A stretch of DNA of 64,000 nucleotides, taken from NCBI GenBank assembly GCA_964252035.1, contig OZ176213.1; one strand, given 5' to 3'. Positions 12,448-45,035 of the stretch are shown here, piece by piece. Below the pieces are notes generated by a model, which saw only the letters and a list, made by a program, of their open reading frames with translations, did no database searches and had not been told where the DNA came from. The position numbers were made by a program, and so were the translations under genes. Each line of letters starts with the position of its first letter. The first letter of the stretch is position 1. Source of the DNA: Podarcis erhardii (taxonomy: Eukaryota).

Positions 12448-12740
12448 NNNNNNNNNNNNNNNNNNNNNNNNNNNNNNNNNNNNNNNNNNNNNNNNNNNNN
12501 NNNNNNNNNNNNNNNNNNNNNNNNNNNNNNNNNNNNNNNNNNNNNNNNNNNNNNNNNNNNNNNNNNNNNNNNNNNNNNNNNNNNNNNNNNNNNNNNNNNN
12601 NNNNNNNNNNNNNNNNNNNNNNNNNNNNNNNNNNNNNNNNNNNNNNNNNNNNNNNNNNNNNNNNNNNNNNNNNNNNNNNNNNNNNNNNNNNNNNNNNNNN
12701 NNNNNNNNNNNNNNNNNNNNNNNNNNNNNNNNNNNNNNNN
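12448..12740. other. Assembly gap (293 N)
   Basis: Run of N. Confidence 1.
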
Positions 12741-12985
12741 TTACGTCTGCTTCATGTTATGCTCTTTCAGGTTGCGTCCTGCAGCGACCTGGAAGTACTG
12801 GAAAGGGTTACTTCCGGGTTTCGCCACTCATGCATGCGCAGAAGCGCAAAATGATATCACGCGCATGCGCAGAAGTGGCAAATCGCAACCTGTGCGTGCG
12901 CAGACACGCCGCTGTGGGTTGCGCTCTTTTCATGTTGTGAACGGGCCTCCAGAACAGATCCCGTTCGCAACCAGAGGTACCACTG
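12741..12985. mobile_element. Second copy of the 10872-type MITE, left end lost in the gap
   Basis: Shares GGGTTTCGCC, ATGCGCAGA repeats and the GAGGTACCACTG|TA end with 10872-11087. Confidence 0.85.
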
Positions 12986-28801: not shown

Positions 28802-29149
<348 letters not shown>

Positions 29150-36202: not shown

Positions 36203-36888
36203 AGATATAAAATTTACAGAAAATGATATAAAAATGATATTATCGATGTTATCTACTGTATTACCAAGTAAATTGGCAAAAATATATAAAGCTAAATCAG
36301 GTAAGTGTGGGAAATGTAAAGAAGGTTCTTTTTATCATATGTGGTGGTCTTGTAGTAAGGATAAAACTTACTGGGAAGTGAAATACAATGTATTGAAAAA
36401 GATGTTTAAAATAACGTTTGCAAAACAGAAGCTTTTCTTTGGGAATTATAGGGACAGAACTACCCAAACTGCATAGAAATTTATTCATGTATGTGACTCC
36501 AGCGGCAAAAGTGGGAAGATGAAGAAGTCCCAGCAAAAGAAGAATGGAGACAAAAACTTGCGGAATATGCAGAAATGGCAAAACTTACTGGAAAAATAAG
36601 AAATCAAGGTAACAAACTTTTTATAAAGGAATGGAAATGATTTATGGAATATTTATGAACAAACTGTAAACAGATAAGAACATTGGCAGGATTATTGTAA
36701 TAACCTGCAGTTTTATAAGAGTAAATATTTAAGGTAGATGAATAAATGAGCAAATTAAGTTAATTTGGATATGCAGAAAATATTAAAAATAATTTTAAGG
36801 AACCGCAGAAAGAAGGGGAAGGAAGTCAAGTTTTGAAATGTTAAAATGATTATAAAATTATTGAAATCTATAAAACTGAAAATCATAA

Positions 36889-36890
<2 letters not shown>
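36203..36890 (+). mobile_element. 5'-truncated L1 (ORF2 C-terminal Cys-rich end plus 3' UTR)
   Basis: The translation KLAKIYK..SGKCGKCKEGSFYHMWWSC matches the L1 ORF2 C-terminal CxxC...HxWWxC motif. It has a G-rich GGGGAAGGAAGTC 3' UTR. Probable TSD TACACAGA at 36195-36202, with the right copy expanded to (CA)n at 36891-36928. Confidence 0.85.
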
Positions 36891-36930
<40 letters not shown>

Positions 36931-37283
36931 CACTGACATGGGCAACCATGGCTGATGAAGGGCTGGATGAAGCAGGAAGGTGTGTATTTGGGGAGTCTTA
37001 TTCAGGCGGGTGGGGAGCAGGGTAAGCCTGAGGTAACAGACCTGCGCCCATTTTAACTGCTCAGAGAATATTTCAGCTCACCCCCTCTGCCTTGCACTTC
37101 TCCTGCCCAACAATATCTCTTCCAACACTGTATAATCTCTAGGACCAAGATGAAAAAAACCAAAACCCTTTACTGAAGTATTAAGCCTTGTCAGTTGAAT
37201 TTCAAGGCAAAACTGCGATGGTGCCAACTGAATTTAAATAATATACAACTTGCTTCTGGCTCCATTAAAACATCTAAATCCAA

Positions 37284-38910
37284 GGACTTCCGGGTTGGCG
37301 CCATCGCCGAATGGCGGACTCCCTCCGAGCTCCGGAGGGAGCCTGCTCGGCAGGGGCTGGGTTCTACCGCGCCGGCGACGCGGGGACCCTCAAAAACCAT
37401 GGGCGCTGAAACCCATGGGCATGGTGACTCGGCGGGCACCGTTTGCGCCCCCCCGACCACGCGAAGGAGCCTTTTTAAAGGCTACGGAGCGGGTGACAGG
37501 GGGGTGGTGGTGCTGTGAGTCCTCCGCTTCCCCTGCCGAGTGAAGCCGCATGCCATTTGGCGGAGAGCGCTGACTTCTTCCATTGAAAATCTGGACTTAA
37601 AAGAATAACCCGTGAGTAATTGGAACTTGGATTAAAAAGGGGAACAAATTTTTTCTTAAATTCGGAGCGAGCGAGGGAGGTGCAAAAAGGAAGTCAGCCT
37701 CCCCCCTGTTGTAGAGGAGCTAAAGCAAAGGACCTGACAACTAAGATCGAGTGCAACCTTTTTTTTTTGATAAAAGTTATTAATTTCGCGATGGAAAATT
37801 ATAAGCTGGGCTGGAGGAGAAAAGTGGAATATGAATTAAAATACAACCCCCCCCCCCGAAAAACCCCGGGAGCGATCCGTGAGAGCGCCGGGAGAGGAGA
37901 AATAGAGGTTTTGACAGCTGTCAAAGGAGCTGCCAAAACTGAAGAACAAAAAGAGAACTTTGTTACGAGGACTTTGCTGGTTACATTTGTTATAAATTGG
38001 ATATAAACTGTTTAAAACAAGGAATAATAAGTTACTTTGACTGGTGGGTGTGATCGGGAAGGAAACTGAGTTATTATAATCCCTCTAGAGGAGCTGTGGG
38101 TCATTACAAGTATTGCTGGCATGGAATTTGAATCGGACTTTTTATCTCCTGGGAAACTGCAGAAATGGAACACTATTTTGTCTACAGAGGTCTACACACT
38201 AAAGGAGACAATAGATTTATCTATTGAAGAATGGAAGGGACTTGACGTAATGTTTTGTTCCTGAATAACAAAGCCTCTGTAGAGGAATTACAAGCTTTTT
38301 GGAATTAGAACATTTGTGCAGGAGAGCAGGGAAAAAGAAAAAAAAAGAGGAGAAGAGAGAACAACAAGAACAACAAGAATAACAAGAACTGGACAAAGTT
38401 GGAAGATAGACCCCTTCCAAGATTGGACATTCGAAATCAAAGATGACCAAAAGACGGCAAAGACTATTAAAAAGACGGCAAAGCGGACTGGTGAAGGACT
38501 ATGGCTTAGATGTGGGAGCTCCAGGATGACAGTAGACATTGACGGACATTGGGAACGCAACCGGGAAAGGGGGGAGGGAAATTTGGAATCCAAAGGGTGT
38601 TAAATTACATTTTATTCTTTTTTCTATTTTTTTATGTTAATCTGTATTGTATACTAAAGAGGGGAACTCGTGGAAGGGAACAGGTCGATTTTAGGGGATG
38701 GGAAAATATTTTTTAAATTGGGTTAATTATAATAACTTTAAAACTTGGGGTAAGAATTTGCTGAATCTATTTGAAAGAACTGGAATACAAGAGGGGGAGG
38801 GGAGGGGAAGTCCTGGAAAGATGACATTGAAAACAAGGCCTTAAATTTGGATGTTTTTCTTTTCTGTTATATTTGAAAATTTTTAATAAATATTATTTAA
38901 AAAAACACAA
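37284..38910 (+). mobile_element. Full-length retroposon without a long ORF, L1-like termini (copy A, 1627 bp)
   Basis: Starts GGACTTCCGG with a CpG-rich head. AATAAA at 38885-38890 and an A-rich tail. Perfect 17-bp TSD AAAACATCTAAATCCAA at 37267-37283 and 38911-38927, with TT|AAAA at the left site. Confidence 0.9.
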
Positions 38911-40834
38911 AAAACATCTAAATCCAATTGTGAGTGTTGAAAACAGCAGGATTCAAATGAAAGGTGCACCAAGAAGAAACTTTACCCTGCCAAGCACAGA
39001 GTTAGGCGGATTAATCCCACCACCCACAGGGTCTACAGGTTGTCCTGGGAGAGACGCAATCTGTCTGCCAGTTCCCTTGCAGAAACTCTCTTACAAAAAG
39101 GAGTGGATTTCGGCCAGAGGAAGGGTCTCTAACAGAACCACTGGCATGCCTTGAAGGATATTAAAACAAAACAAAACAAAAAAACCCAAAACATACCCTG
39201 CTCTTGCTAGTCTGCCCTGCTGCCTTGATCCCAAGGTGAACAACAGGCAGACAGATCCAGTTGCATAGCCCCTCTCAGTCCTGGGAATTTGCCTGCTCCA
39301 AGTTCAGCTCAACAGCATTGTGGGATTTACAGATCTGGTTGTGAGCTGACTCAAGGCTACCTTAACACTAGAAACTCCTCACAATCTTTTCTTTGTGGGG
39401 ACAGTTCACAGAGCTGTGCTACATGTCCTCAACCATGTTTGGCTCTTGGAAACCCACCCTCTTCACACCTGGCAACGCAGAAAAGGCGGAGAACCTGGGC
39501 TGACCTACTGCAAGAACGATGGGAAACAAGTCAACCGAATTCAACGGCCGTATTTCAGAGGATTGTGAATGTTCTTCATAATCACAAATCACAATTGAAA
39601 AGGGCCGTTTCACAGCATGAAGCATTTTGTATCAACCATTTTCATGTGCACTAAAGATAAAAATGGTCCAAGGCAGAAAGCTGCTATTAGCCCCAGATTC
39701 ACGTGATTGTTTACTCCAATCCTGTATTATTAATGCTGCATTGAGAGCGGTATCATCCTGCTCAGAGTTGCTCTCCCCATAAGCAGGACCATTGGGGGAC
39801 TTGGATGCCAACAGCTTGGCTCTGGCTTAAGTGAGTCGTGGGCAGCAGAAGCCCCTACACTGGAGGCCGAGAGTTCGGATGACGGTGAACTAATGGCCTT
39901 GCTTTAATATTGCTCGCCATTTAAATTGCCTATATTTTAATAAAGCCTCTCAGTGTCTCTCTCTTCTTCCGTCTGCCCAATTTTCAATGTCTCCCTTGAC
40001 AATAGCTAAACTTGCAGAGGTGTATAATATGATTAACGCCATGAAACTAATTATGATGTAAGAAAGAACCTTTGGCACGGTCGTATTTGGTTTGGTTCAT
40101 TATCAGTGTGTGACGGTTAATAAATGAATCTCACAAGTTACTGTTTGCAAACTCTCAGCAATTTGGTGGGATCATGACGCTAATTCACAATTAATTTCCT
40201 CGGCTAACCATTAATAATGAAATAACTCTGTTTGCTTGTCAGCTTCCATCTCTCTCTTTTATTCCAATCAACGCAGCACATTCATGTACAGAAATTACAC
40301 AGATTAGCTTTTCCGCAACAAAGGGAGAGATAGTGAGCAGGCCGGATGATGATTCAGGCCCCCAAACAAAGGCTTAACTGCCCAATTTCAGCCCTCAAAG
40401 CACCACTCCTGGAATGCTGGGTGTGTGTGACTTTTGAGAGATGCCACAAGGATGGATGCTGCCTAGGGACCCTGTGGGGAAGGGAATGGGATGGACCCAG
40501 AGAACTGTGTCTGAGAATCCAAGGGAGTTTTAGACTTGTGTTTGTTGCCCCCCCCCCACCTGCATGGTAACTCCATTTTGAAGCTGAGGGGAGTTGCAAA
40601 AGTTGTTTGTGATGAGGCATGGAGTTGGGGAGAGGTCTGCCAAAGTTCATAATCTCTTGGCTTGAAATATGCATCTTGATGATTCATAATGCTCACCTTC
40701 AAACTGAGGGGACTCACTGAGGTCCCAGAGTGTTTCCCTCGCTTAGATTTCAAGCTGAGTTAGAAAACCCCTAACCCGATACAGGATTGCCTTCAGATGC
40801 CTTCTAAAAGTCAGATAATTGTTTATTTCCTTGA

Positions 40835-41125
40835 CATCTGATGGGAGGGCGTTCCACAGGGCGGGTGCCACTACTGAGAAGGCCCTCTGCCTGGTTCGCT
40901 GTAACCTCACTTTTCACAGTGAGGGAACTACCAGAAGGCCCTTGGAGCTGGACCTCAGTGTCCAGGCTGGATGATGGGGGTGGAGACGCTCCTTCAGGTA
41001 TACTGGGCCAAGGCCATTTAGGGCTTTAAAGGTCATCACCAATACTTTGAATTGTGCTCAGAAATGTACTGGGAACCAATGTAGGTCTTTCAGGATTGGT
41101 GTCATATGGTCTCAGCGACCATATG
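40835..41125 (-). mobile_element. L2-clade LINE fragment
   Basis: Reverse complement encodes LHWFPVHF*AQFKVLVMTFKALNGLGPVYLKERL, homologous to 3731-3919. Confidence 0.8.
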
Positions 41126-41675
41126 GGACAAATGCATAGGTGCAGAAGAGGAGGGGGTTTTTCGGGGACGACGACAAAAATCCCATTGAACCCTACTATG
41201 TCCATCTCTCTCTGTGAGTGGGGGTGCTGCTTGGGGGTGCTGTGGGTGTTGCAGTTAGGCTGCAACTCAAGGAAGTTTATTTAGATGCCATCCAGGCTCA
41301 CAGCACCTCCTCTGGTGCTTTGGAAAGTACGACAGAACCACCAATAAATTCAAAAGGTAAAAGGTTAGTCAGAGAAATCTTTTCACCCTCCAGGGCTTGC
41401 ATGGACTGTTAACGATTATATAAAACCAGCAACCACGAAACAGCGGCACATTTCCCTTCAGAGAGATGTGGAGCCTTTCGTGACGCTCTTGCTGCGCAGA
41501 TGGCAGGCCCCTCAAAGGATTCCACCTGAACCAAGTGGACAGTGTGGGAGGATGGGGAGAGAGCTGGGAGAGGGCTCCATGTTGCCAGAAAGGGTCTCTA
41601 AAAAGGGGGGGCACTAGAACCCGCAGGAGACAGAAGCTGGTTTGGGGGGTTGCTATGTCTCGCGCCCTCAGATCG

Positions 41676-42044
41676 TGTTATGTACTGAGTTGAATAGGAT
41701 CCAAAATGCAGCAGTCTGATTGGTCCTAGAACAATAGGATTCAGAATGCAGGAGTTTGATTGGTCCTAGAACAATAGGATCCAGAATGCAGCAGTCTGAT
41801 TGGTCCTAGAACAATAGGATCCAGAATGCAGCAGTCTGATTGGTCCGCAGAAGTCACCAATCCAACTCCAGGTAGAAGTGAATCCGCAACCTGATTGGCC
41901 TACAGGAGAATCCCAGAATTAACCAATCACGTGGGGCCCATTGTGTAAATAATGTATATAAAGCAGACATTTCGGGGGAACTTCCATTCCTCACTACTAT
42001 GAGCTGAATAAAGAGCATGAAATCCACACTCGACTCCGACAACA
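41676..42044 (+). mobile_element. Solo-LTR-like element with a 40-bp tandem array
   Basis: TGTT...AACA ends and ~3.9 copies of a 40-bp unit (41693-41847). TATATAAA at 41955-41962 and AATAAA at 42007-42012, in LTR U3-R order. No TSD is evident, so the right end is uncertain. Confidence 0.65.
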
Positions 42045-42495
42045 CAGGCCAGGCTCCTCAGGTACCAGCCCTCAAGCGCTCCCCAACCCTGCTGCCACAC
42101 AAGGGCAGATCCTCTCCCCTCCCTCAGCTGCCTGCCTCCCCCCTTACGGCTTCATGGAGTGTTTCCACAGGAGCCCCACTCCAACCTGCTTAGCCAGAAA
42201 AATGCTTTATGGGCCTTGAGCAGGAGAGGCGGCAGGGACTCCCCTCCCCCAGCTGCTCAGGGACCAGCAGAGAGAACAGGCTGGTTCTCTTGGGGAAGGA
42301 AGAGAAGGAGGGGGTGTGAAGCCCTATCTATTTTGAGACGGATGACCCAGCAAGGCACCTTCGCCCCACTCAAGCCTCCTTGCTAATCTCCTCCAGATTG
42401 CCTTTTACGAGGAGGAGGAGGAGGAGGAGGAGGAATGTACATAATTATGTTTTTATAAAATATTCATCAAGCTCATATGGAAGAAATTGGGTAGC

Positions 42496-44133
42496 GGACT
42501 TCCGGGTCGGCGCCATCGCCGAATGGCGGACTCCCTCCGAGCTCCGGAGGGAGCCTGCACGGCAGGGGCTGGGTCCTACCGCACCGGCGATGCGGGGACC
42601 CTTAAAAACCACGGCCACGGGGGCCGTGGACATGGAGACTCGGCTGACACCGTTAGCGCCCTCCCGACCCGTGAAGGAGCCTTTTTAAAGGCTACGGATC
42701 GGGTGCCGGGGAGAAGCGTGGTGTTTTGAGTCCTCTGCTATCCCTGCCGTGCGAAGCCGCATGCCATTCGGCGGAGAGCGCTGGCTTCTTCCTTTGAAAA
42801 TTCGGACCTAAAAGAACAACCTGTAAGTAATTGGAACTTGGACTAAAAAGAGGGACAAAAATTTTAAAAATTTCGGAGCGAGCGGGGGAGGCGCAAAAAA
42901 GGAAGTCAGCCACCCCCTCCATTGTAGAAGGGTCAAAGCAAAGGATCTGATAACTAAGATCGGAGTAACATCATTTTGGCAAGTTTTTAACCTCACGAGT
43001 GAAGAATATGAGATTGAGCTGGAGGAGGAAAGTAGAATTCGGACTTAAAAACAACCCCCCCTGGAACCCCGGGAGCGATCGATGACGGAGTTTGGAGAGG
43101 AGAAAGGCAAGTTTTGACAGCTGTCAAAGAGCTGTCAAAGCGGAAAATAAGATAGAGACTATGTTACAAGGACTTTGCTGGTTATATTTGTTATAAATTG
43201 GATACAAATTGTTTTAAATAAGGATTACAAAGTTACTAGGGCTAATGGACGCGATCTGGAAGAGAACTCAGTTTTTGCAATCCACCTAGAGGAGCCGATG
43301 GACATTACAAGTTTTAGCTGGAAATTGGAACTGAACTGTTTATCTCCTGGGAAACTGCAGAAATGGAACATTATTATGACTACAGAGGCCACTACACCGA
43401 AGAAGACAATGGAATCATCTGTTGTGGAATGAAAGGAACTTGACGTAATGTTTTGTTTCTGAATAACAAGCCTCTGTAAAGGAACTAACTTTTGGAATTA
43501 GGACATTTGTGCAGGAAAGCAGGGACAATAAGAACAATAAAATAACAAGAATTGGACCAAGTTAAAAGTGGGGACATTTGGGACATCCAGATTTGACAAG
43601 TTTAAGGATTATAATTTGGAGTTTTTCACTCCTGGATATAAAAATCTGGATGGAAAAAATGGGCCTCTCTTTGAGACAGAATCCTTCCATGATTGGACAT
43701 TCGAAACTAAAGAGGACTGGCAAAGGACTATGATCTAGAGAGACGTGGAAATATCGGACATTGAGGAACATTGGGAACGCAACCGGGAAAAGGGGGGGTG
43801 GGAAATGTGGAATCCTTAAAGGCGTAAACTATGTTTTATTTAGGCTATATACATCTACATGGTATTCTAAAGTGGGGAACTCGTGGTGGGAATAAGCCGA
43901 TTTTAGGGGAATGGAAAATAATGTTTTTTTTTAAAAAAAAAAATTGGGTTAAGGATAACAAGTTTGAATTGAGGAGAAGAACTTGTTGAGATCATTTGAG
44001 AGATTTGGAATACAAGGGGGGGAGGGAAGGGGAAGTCCTGAAAGGATGTAATTGGAAAAAGATTTGGAATTGGATGTTTTATTAATTTGTAATTAATTGG
44101 AAAACTTTAATAAATATTATTAAAAAAAAAAAA
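42496..44133 (+). mobile_element. Full-length retroposon without a long ORF, L1-like termini (copy B, 1638 bp)
   Basis: Same GGACTTCCGG start and collinear with copy A throughout. AATAAA at 44109-44114 plus a poly(A) tail. Perfect 15-bp TSD AAGAAATTGGGTAGC at 42481-42495 and 44134-44148. Confidence 0.9.
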
Positions 44134-45035
44134 AAGAAATTGGGTAGCACGCCTTTATCAATAATTGAGACTTGAGAGAATCATAATCTTGTTGGGGGTG
44201 AGCAGAGAGCGAACGAAGCTCACCGTGCCCCCCCACCAGAGCTTATCCTGAGTGAGTTTTCTTATGTGTAAGGAGGCATGAAGGCATCTCAGCAAGGGCA
44301 TTTCAGGCCAGTGCCATCAGGGCAACTGGCGTTGGGTGGGGCTGGGGGAGCAACCTGAGAAAGGGTGGAAAGAGAATCTGTAGGAAGAGCCCGTGACGAT
44401 CCCAGACCTTTCACAGATGCTTGCCATTCTACAACAGAGGCCATGGAAAGGGGCCTTTCCTAATTCCATTTAATTAGAAGCAGCGTTCTGTGCCAAGGTG
44501 GGCACACAGCAGGAAGGCACGGATCCAGGATACCTGCTCCCTTGGGAACCAATTGCCCCTCCTTGCCTCTCCCCAAAATGCAGGAAGGAGGGCAGAGGCA
44601 GAGTCCAAATGCTCAGTGACAGCATGGCTTGCAGCTCCTTTATTTGTGTGTGTGTTGGGGGGGGAGGGTATTTCTCTGCATCTGGTGAAGTACTACTGTG
44701 GGGTTATCCACAGTTTTTGTCCCACTCCATCCAGGCACAGGTCTGTGCTTAAAAGCTCCATGTCGGAGCATTGCCTGGGAGGGGTGAGGGGCGTTGCCCC
44801 AGAGCTTTCCCTATGAAAACCTGCTCTTTAGCATTCCATCGGAGTGAATGCCAATTTCGCTTTTCTGCAGATTGTAATTTACCCTGATTGAGCTTTAAAG
44901 AGTGGGTTTTTGTGTGTGTGTGGGGGGGGGAGCTCCAGAGCAAAAGCAAGGGTGCTCAGGCATGGATCTGTAAAGTGTAAAGTGTAATGTGTGCCTGGAA
45001 AGAGCAGAGGAAAAGTAAGCCCTGTGTTAGCAGCG

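Follow-up and report, generated by a model that had tools for sequence, protein, structure and literature searches.

Two copies of one retroposon

The window analysed here is a 64,000-nucleotide (nt) stretch of contig OZ176213.1 from the Podarcis erhardii assembly GCA_964252035.1. It contains two copies, hereafter A and B, of a retroposon that starts at a fixed base, ends in AATAAA plus an A tail and encodes no protein. In the reading that we consider likely, the two copies inserted recently and represent two subfamilies of a poly(A) retroposon that is abundant, non-coding and non-autonomous, and that would be transcribed by RNA polymerase II (Pol II) and mobilised in trans by the long interspersed element LINE-1 (L1). 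The positions of both copies and of their parts are collected in Table 1.

The first bases of A and B are identical (GGACTTCCGG) and the two copies are collinear, with the 3' end of copy B placed at either 44133 or 44135 (1638-1640 bp) because its A tail overlaps the target-site duplication (TSD). The first-pass annotation had described the shared start base, the collinearity, the AATAAA with its A tail and perfect TSDs of 17 and 15 bp, and all of these were confirmed by reading and alignment. The same is true of its placement of copy A at a TT/AAAA site, which reads CATT/AAAACATC, while the target of copy B (TGG/AAGAAA) is a looser fit to TT/AAAA, with these two sites being the entire sample. 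In both copies, 7-8 nt separate the AATAAA from the A tail, and the tails directly abut the 3' TSDs, as a 12-nt A-rich stretch in A and as a pure run of 14 A in B. A BLASTN search of the 64-kb window with a word size of 9 found A and B and no third copy.

Alignment by BLASTN and MAFFT gave 80% identity between A and B over element nt 1-1063, with 95% across the first 100 nt and 74% across the last ~380 nt. Three parts can be distinguished. The first, nt 1-335, is a CpG-rich head and the best conserved part of the element. This is followed by a body (nt ~336-1250) that is rich in A (36%), poor in C (13%) and contains a variable zone, and lastly by a tail comprising the final ~380 nt, in which a G-rich polypurine tract sits ~90 nt before the AATAAA. 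The variable zone is rearranged between the two copies; all that they have in common there is a 33-nt block in displaced position and a short 9-mer repeat, the latter present as 3.6 units in A and as 3.1 degenerate units in B. Judging from the loose ends of mapped contigs, most family members are without the ~30-bp duplication of copy A.

Table 1. Positions of the two retroposon copies and of their parts within the 64-kb window.
Feature	Position	Strand	Basis or remark
Copy A, complete element, 1627 bp	37284..38910	+	alignment; repeat depth starts and stops here; empty site in relative
Copy B, complete element, second subfamily, ~80% identical to A	42496..44135	+	alignment; B-type strings in X1 and X5
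5' TSD of copy A, 17 bp	37267..37283	.	exact match to 38911-38927; context TT/AAAA
3' TSD of copy A	38911..38927	.	
5' TSD of copy B, 15 bp	42481..42495	.	exact match to 44134-44148
3' TSD of copy B	44134..44148	.	
5' head of copy A	37284..37618	+	GC 52-68%, CpG observed/expected ~0.9; predicted closed RNA domain
5' head of copy B	42496..42830	+	fold as in A, compensatory changes
Variable zone of copy A (nt ~1064-1251)	38347..38534	+	9-mer x3.6 at 38358-38389; private ~30-bp duplication
G-rich polypurine tract, A nt 1510-1524	38793..38807	+	kept in copy B at element nt 1521-1537
3' end of copy A: AATAAA 38885-38890, short impure A tail 38899-38910	38885..38910	+	
3' end of copy B: AATAAA 44109-44114, pure 14-A tail 44122-44135	44109..44135	+	

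Abundance, age and coding capacity of the family

The Logan contigs of four runs were mapped onto positions 36800-39400 at a likeness of at least 80%. Run X1 is probably from the assembly's own species, while run X5 is from another, related species. One X5 contig (record 24, 679 nt) covers 36863-37282 and then continues at 38925-39153, with flanks that are 95-99% alike and with copy A absent. This empty orthologous site dates the insertion of copy A to after the split of the two lineages, unless the copy is still polymorphic. It should be noted that the joint 37282/38925 has four extra letters (GGAG) and is not a clean single copy of the TSD, which may reflect an artefact of the alignment or a small indel that separates the two species.

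Summed contig depth, which according to the tool's own warning is not copy number, is flat at 91 in the X1 flanks and lies between 224,000 and 1,366,000 in the element interior; the corresponding X5 values are ~7 and 25,000-207,000. In both species, the depth steps by 10^3- to 10^4-fold at 37284 and at ~38910, in the very bins that hold the element ends. Since these repeat boundaries coincide with the ends of the element in two species, and since the site of copy A is empty in a relative, the resemblance of A and B is more than a chance coincidence. Both copies are discrete retroposed units, each with TSDs and an A tail, and for copy A with an orthologous empty site. The high genomic copy number proposed in the first-pass annotation is likewise borne out, indirectly, by the depth steps in both species, measured in contigs rather than as listed loci.

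Autonomous L1s show an excess of depth at their 3' ends, owing to 5' truncation. This 3' excess is absent here, so most copies appear to be full-length. It is the head (nt ~40-300) that is 2-4 times deeper than the body; other families may have the head too, or its better conservation may let it pass the 80% filter more often. Separately, single contigs join head straight to tail (X1, 37445 to 38840; X5, 37307 to 38680), which could reflect shorter head-plus-tail derivative families or assembly chimeras.

The family is also young. Among the 11,239 X1 contigs mapped, 2,567 are at least 99% alike to copy A and a further 3,463 are 95-99% alike. In X5, from which 4,923 contigs were mapped, 60% of the 31-mers of copy A are present, even though this species is without the copy A insertion. 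For several contigs (at 37495 in X1, at 38405 in X5), the consensus of the loose ends repeats strings diagnostic of B, and thus the B type is an abundant subfamily rather than a single decayed copy. Given the perfect TSDs, the CpG observed/expected ratios of 0.9-1.1 in the heads of both copies and the many contigs near-identical to A, the 20% by which A and B differ was built up in active source elements before insertion. Overall, the family is abundant and young, and it appears to be mostly full-length.

These numbers bear directly upon whether A and B could instead be processed pseudogenes derived from a Pol II gene of the host, either a long non-coding RNA or a short mRNA. Such an origin would account for the poly(A), the TSDs, the AATAAA, the missing open reading frame (ORF), the CpG-island-like 5' end and the GTRAGT motif at nt 328. 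However, retrocopies of host genes normally come without a promoter and form no active subfamilies, whereas here the extreme 5' end is the most conserved part, at least two subfamilies are abundant, many contigs are at least 99% alike and the multiplicity in two species exceeds the single-copy level of the flanks by a factor of thousands. We therefore regard a pseudogene origin as highly improbable.

Neither copy has coding capacity or any remnant of a reverse transcriptase (RT) or endonuclease. The longest open stretch in A or B is 128 aa, and the 128-aa stretch of A is disrupted by frameshifts and stops in B, with the frames not being common to the two copies. One frame does stay in register for ~300 nt (A nt ~690-1000, with a 3-nt indel), where 93 aa are open in B and five stops interrupt A; its substitutions fall 21/26/16 by phase, with no third-position excess (chi-square P = 0.24). 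Codon periodicity of the A/B substitutions was absent from every 150-nt window of the element. Searches of Pfam with eight open pieces (E up to 10) returned no family of interest, including Transposase_22, and searches of the Protein Data Bank (PDB) with four open pieces (E <= 10) returned no match to L1 ORF1p. Regular expressions for RT motifs found none, and a word-indexed protein search found nothing, whether the query was the 128-aa ORF or an ORF in the head. A phmmer search with the 93-aa piece of B against 1.84 billion proteins yielded three matches that we rejected as chance: all are short 'GTLQKWN'-type stretches repeated 6-11 times in giant repetitive proteins, and this repetition inflates the E-values. 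The first-pass annotation had reported no ORF over ~130 aa and no RT or endonuclease motif, and had proposed a comparison with L1 ORF1p; the former holds, while the latter, made on the open pieces of the individual copies, gave no match. Its distinction from HAL1 stands as well, as neither copy has an ORF or a trace of codon-level constraint.

The same evidence speaks to a different origin, in which the family would be an ORF-less offshoot of ORF1-bearing 'half-L1' elements, HAL1-like in descent and with a middle portion that is decayed ORF1. The frame that remains aligned for ~300 nt across a 3-nt indel fits this, as does the summed depth of the head relative to the body, which looks as if the head were common to other families. 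Yet codon periodicity is missing, the remaining frames shift between A and B, and neither Transposase_22 nor an ORF1p structure was matched even at E = 10. Furthermore, A and B are 20% diverged and both ORF-less with one architecture, which argues that the ORF-less form itself has been propagating. We consider descent from half-L1 elements unlikely, though still the most credible of the alternatives that we weigh.

Searches for RNA polymerase III (Pol III) features were uniformly negative: no tRNA was found in the element, no A or B boxes in its first 400 nt and no match in Rfam, whether at gathering scores or at E <= 5, with ribozymes, 7SL, 7SK and RNase P/MRP included. In addition, runs of T5 to T10 occur throughout the element, with a T5 at nt ~188 kept in both copies, and such runs would terminate Pol III. 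The internal T runs together with the AATAAA and the poly(A) tail point to Pol II, by which the element is probably transcribed. Identity as a short interspersed element (SINE) was accordingly rejected, given a length of 1.63 kb where SINEs stay under ~600 bp, the lack of tRNA, Rfam and A/B box matches and the internal T5-T10 runs. An autonomous or 5'-truncated L1 was also rejected, as no intact or decayed ORF2 sequence (endonuclease or RT) is present. In these respects, our results agree with the first-pass annotation, which saw no tRNA head and no Pol III boxes and concluded that the element is neither a SINE nor a truncated L1; the searches found no RT or endonuclease remnant, no ORF1-like piece and no Pol III features.

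The 5' head and the proposed route of mobilisation

An ETS-like motif (ACTTCCGG) occupies nt 3-10 of the head, and two YY1-core hexamers follow in inverted orientation, CGCCAT at nt 16-21 and ATGGCG at nt 28-33. According to PMC11602158, YY1 binds the extreme 5' end of the human L1 5' untranslated region (UTR) and dictates the transcription start site. The position of the YY1 cores in the lizard head is a resemblance to human L1 and nothing further.

The head is also predicted to fold stably. For copy A, the minimum free energy is -172 kcal/mol, compared with -140 +/- 5 for dinucleotide shuffles (z = -6.4), and nt 3-12 are predicted to pair with nt 326-335, so that the domain closes at the first bases of the element. 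RNAalifold on A plus B gave 110 pairs, of which 6 have changed on both sides, 10 show one-sided wobble-compatible changes and 0 are broken. One hairpin, for example, pairs CCATGGG with CCCATGG in A and CCACGGCC with GGCCGTGG in B. Because RNAalifold favours compatible pairs, each copy was folded alone and the 43 substitutions of the other copy were scored against its fold, with the expectation taken from the same substitutions placed at random on the same bases. By this measure, double compensatory changes number 4-6 where about 1 is expected, and broken pairs number 6-9 where about 15 are expected (P 0.0005-0.007). The same test was null for nt 339-690 and for nt 1291 to the end, and for nt 691-1040 it was null in three of four measures. 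Since the stems are kept between subfamilies by compensatory changes, we infer that the head is a conserved RNA fold under selection in the active source copies. Its role may lie in promoter function, in RNA stability or in access to the L1 machinery.

A splice-donor-like GTRAGT (GTGAGTAA in one copy and GTAAGTAA in the other) is conserved at the 3' edge of the head, at element nt 328-334 (37611-37617 and 42823-42829). These same bases form the closing stem with the first 12 nt of the element. No contig joint was seen at this position among the mapped contigs.

From these features, a route of propagation can be proposed. Transcription by Pol II would start from an internal promoter in the CpG-rich 335-nt head, such that every full-length copy would carry its own promoter, and the transcript would be cleaved and polyadenylated at the element's own AATAAA. 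As neither copy encodes a protein, copying must depend on an element with enzymes of its own, which is most likely LINE-1. The endonuclease and RT of an autonomous L1 would thus act on the RNA in trans, by target-primed reverse transcription at TT/AAAA-like sites, while selection on the source copies would maintain the head as a promoter, as an RNA fold or as both.

Another class of LINE might in principle supply these enzymes, namely CR1, L2, RTE/Bov-B, R4 or a further squamate clade. Such clades typically recognise a 3' stem-loop or a microsatellite tail, and their TSDs are short or absent. Squamate genomes do hold several active LINE clades (PMC6050309). Nevertheless, the element ends in AATAAA and an A tail (pure in B), its TSDs are 15-17 bp long, within the variable ~7-20 bp of L1-type insertions, and copy A lies at TT/AAAA, which together make a partner other than L1 the least probable of the alternatives, even below the pseudogene origin.

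A more speculative proposal concerns the head itself. It could be a portable structured RNA module through which non-coding RNAs reach the L1 machinery, much as Alu does by its SRP9/14-binding fold, and several RT-less families in the genome could have it in common. If the head were shared in this way, its 2- to 4-fold greater abundance over the body would be explained. We hold this to be doubtful, slightly more so than the half-L1 descent discussed above.

Several points weigh against a non-coding, Pol II-transcribed and L1-mobilised family as we propose it. Other family members might carry an ORF that A and B lack, and the abundance of ~10^3-10^4 copy-equivalents, having been read from summed contig depth, is an order of magnitude only. 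The partnership with L1 is suggested by insertion hallmarks at two sites, of which that of copy B (GG/AAGAAA) is imperfect. Neither the RT motif searches nor Pfam, run on 139 open stretches of 75 aa or longer, revealed an L1 in the 64-kb window, and the only hit was a host C1-domain exon. As for the fold, just two sequences underlie the structural signal, which is as strong on the minus strand, such that a plus-strand RNA fold is not proven by the signal alone. CpG hypermutability could, without selection, also account for two of the six double changes, which are CpG-to-TpG/CpA pairs within palindromic stems; the remaining four are of a different type. Lastly, the shallow runs X15 and X16, which are only guessed to be RNA, hold family contigs, from which we draw no conclusion about transcription, as a high-copy repeat would show in their contigs even if they were DNA.

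On balance, the interpretation offered in the first-pass annotation is upheld in part. A discrete, high-copy retroposon without 5'-truncation bias that is neither a SINE nor a truncated L1, with Pol III excluded by the T runs, stands on the observations above, whereas mobilisation by L1 is as yet what the insertion hallmarks suggest.

Genomic context and comparison with known systems

Elsewhere in the window, an exon at 28907-29056 on the minus strand encodes the C1 domain of an unc-13 (Munc13) homologue (Pfam C1_1, 2.8e-14) and matches the Munc13-1 structures 5UE8 and 7T7C in the PDB ('Protein unc-13 homolog A', E ~3e-44). This match places the window inside an unc-13 homologue and the plus-strand copies A and B antisense to the gene; both are probably intronic. 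Several other repeats were noted. Another very high-copy repeat at 36800-36886 ends ~400 bp upstream of copy A, with an X1 depth of 438,796 versus 91 in the adjoining unique DNA. Between the two copies lie a 40-bp tandem repeat (41693-41846, 3.8 copies, 93% identity) and a perfect (GAG)n microsatellite (42409-42434, 8.7 units), the latter 60 bp upstream of copy B. A repeat-like stretch at 12742-12940, next to a run of N at 12449-12741, contains ACTTCCGGGTTTCGCC and then, in three copies, a GCGCATGCGCAGAAG-like palindrome similar to an NRF1 site; the stretch has an ETS-like start, much like the opening bases of the retroposon head.

The proteins of L1 prefer the RNA that encoded them, and how non-coding RNAs bypass this cis-preference is understood mainly for Alu. 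A young and abundant 1.6-kb ORF-less family with diverged active subfamilies and a structurally constrained 5' domain would be well suited to asking, in a non-mammalian setting, which features an RNA must have for L1 to copy it. Lineage-specific insertions, such as the one with an empty site in the sister species, could also serve as phylogenetic or population markers. Furthermore, the family can seed CpG-rich, promoter-like sequence inside genes, as with the two antisense copies in this unc-13 homologue. A repeat library may already hold a consensus, and if the family is already in such libraries, the finding amounts to ordinary annotation; the structured head, the youth and the abundance of the family are the points worth following. 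Our literature search found no description of such a lizard family. A 21-mer from the head matched 8 contigs in microbial and metagenomic collections, with only 21-29 nt in common, which we rejected as chance, and a 31-mer had no match there.

Among known systems, the UTRs of autonomous LINE-1 share with the lizard element a CpG-rich 5' end, a YY1 core within ~35 nt, an A-rich and C-poor strand, a G-rich 3' tract and an AATAAA with poly(A), whereas A and B are without ORF1 and ORF2. This likeness is one of general features and not of alignment. The L1-like look of the head and of the 3' end would be a matter of such resemblances (YY1 core and ETS motif in the first 35 nt, A-rich and C-poor sense strand, G-rich 3' tract).

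HAL1 is a non-autonomous L1 derivative that encodes only ORF1p and arose several times (PMC5753468). As with the lizard family, HAL1 elements are RT-less, of fixed length (1.5-2.5 kb) and polyadenylated, carry L1-type TSDs and are thought to depend upon L1 ORF2p. The difference lies in ORF1, which HAL1 keeps, while A and B are without an ORF, an ORF1-like piece or codon-level constraint.

The SVA and LAVA elements of hominoids are described in PMC7353768 as Pol II-transcribed, polyadenylated, non-coding, 1-3 kb in length and mobilised by L1, with full-length copies and active subfamilies. However, they are composites of Alu-like, variable number tandem repeat (VNTR), SINE-R or L1 pieces without a fixed internal promoter, whereas in the lizard element the 5' head is conserved and its first base is fixed. 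An SVA-like composite was itself considered as an identity for A and B and rejected, as there is no central VNTR, just a 9-mer of 3-4 units, and no recognisable composite modules.

Trypanosomes offer a further case. According to PMC1874656 and PMC4035085, RIME (with ingi) and NARTc (with L1Tc) are non-coding, high-copy, non-autonomous LINE partners that keep the 5' and 3' ends of the LINE. The retained 5' end serves as an internal Pol II promoter and also forms a structured RNA, Pr77, which is in addition a ribozyme similar to that of hepatitis delta virus. Host and LINE clade are different, and RIME and NARTc are plain deletion derivatives of 0.26-0.5 kb with demonstrated LINE homology, whereas the lizard element has a body of ~1.3 kb and matches no ribozyme family. 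These elements are nonetheless its closest functional parallel, as they too combine a structured, conserved 5' head with a tail and have no ORFs.

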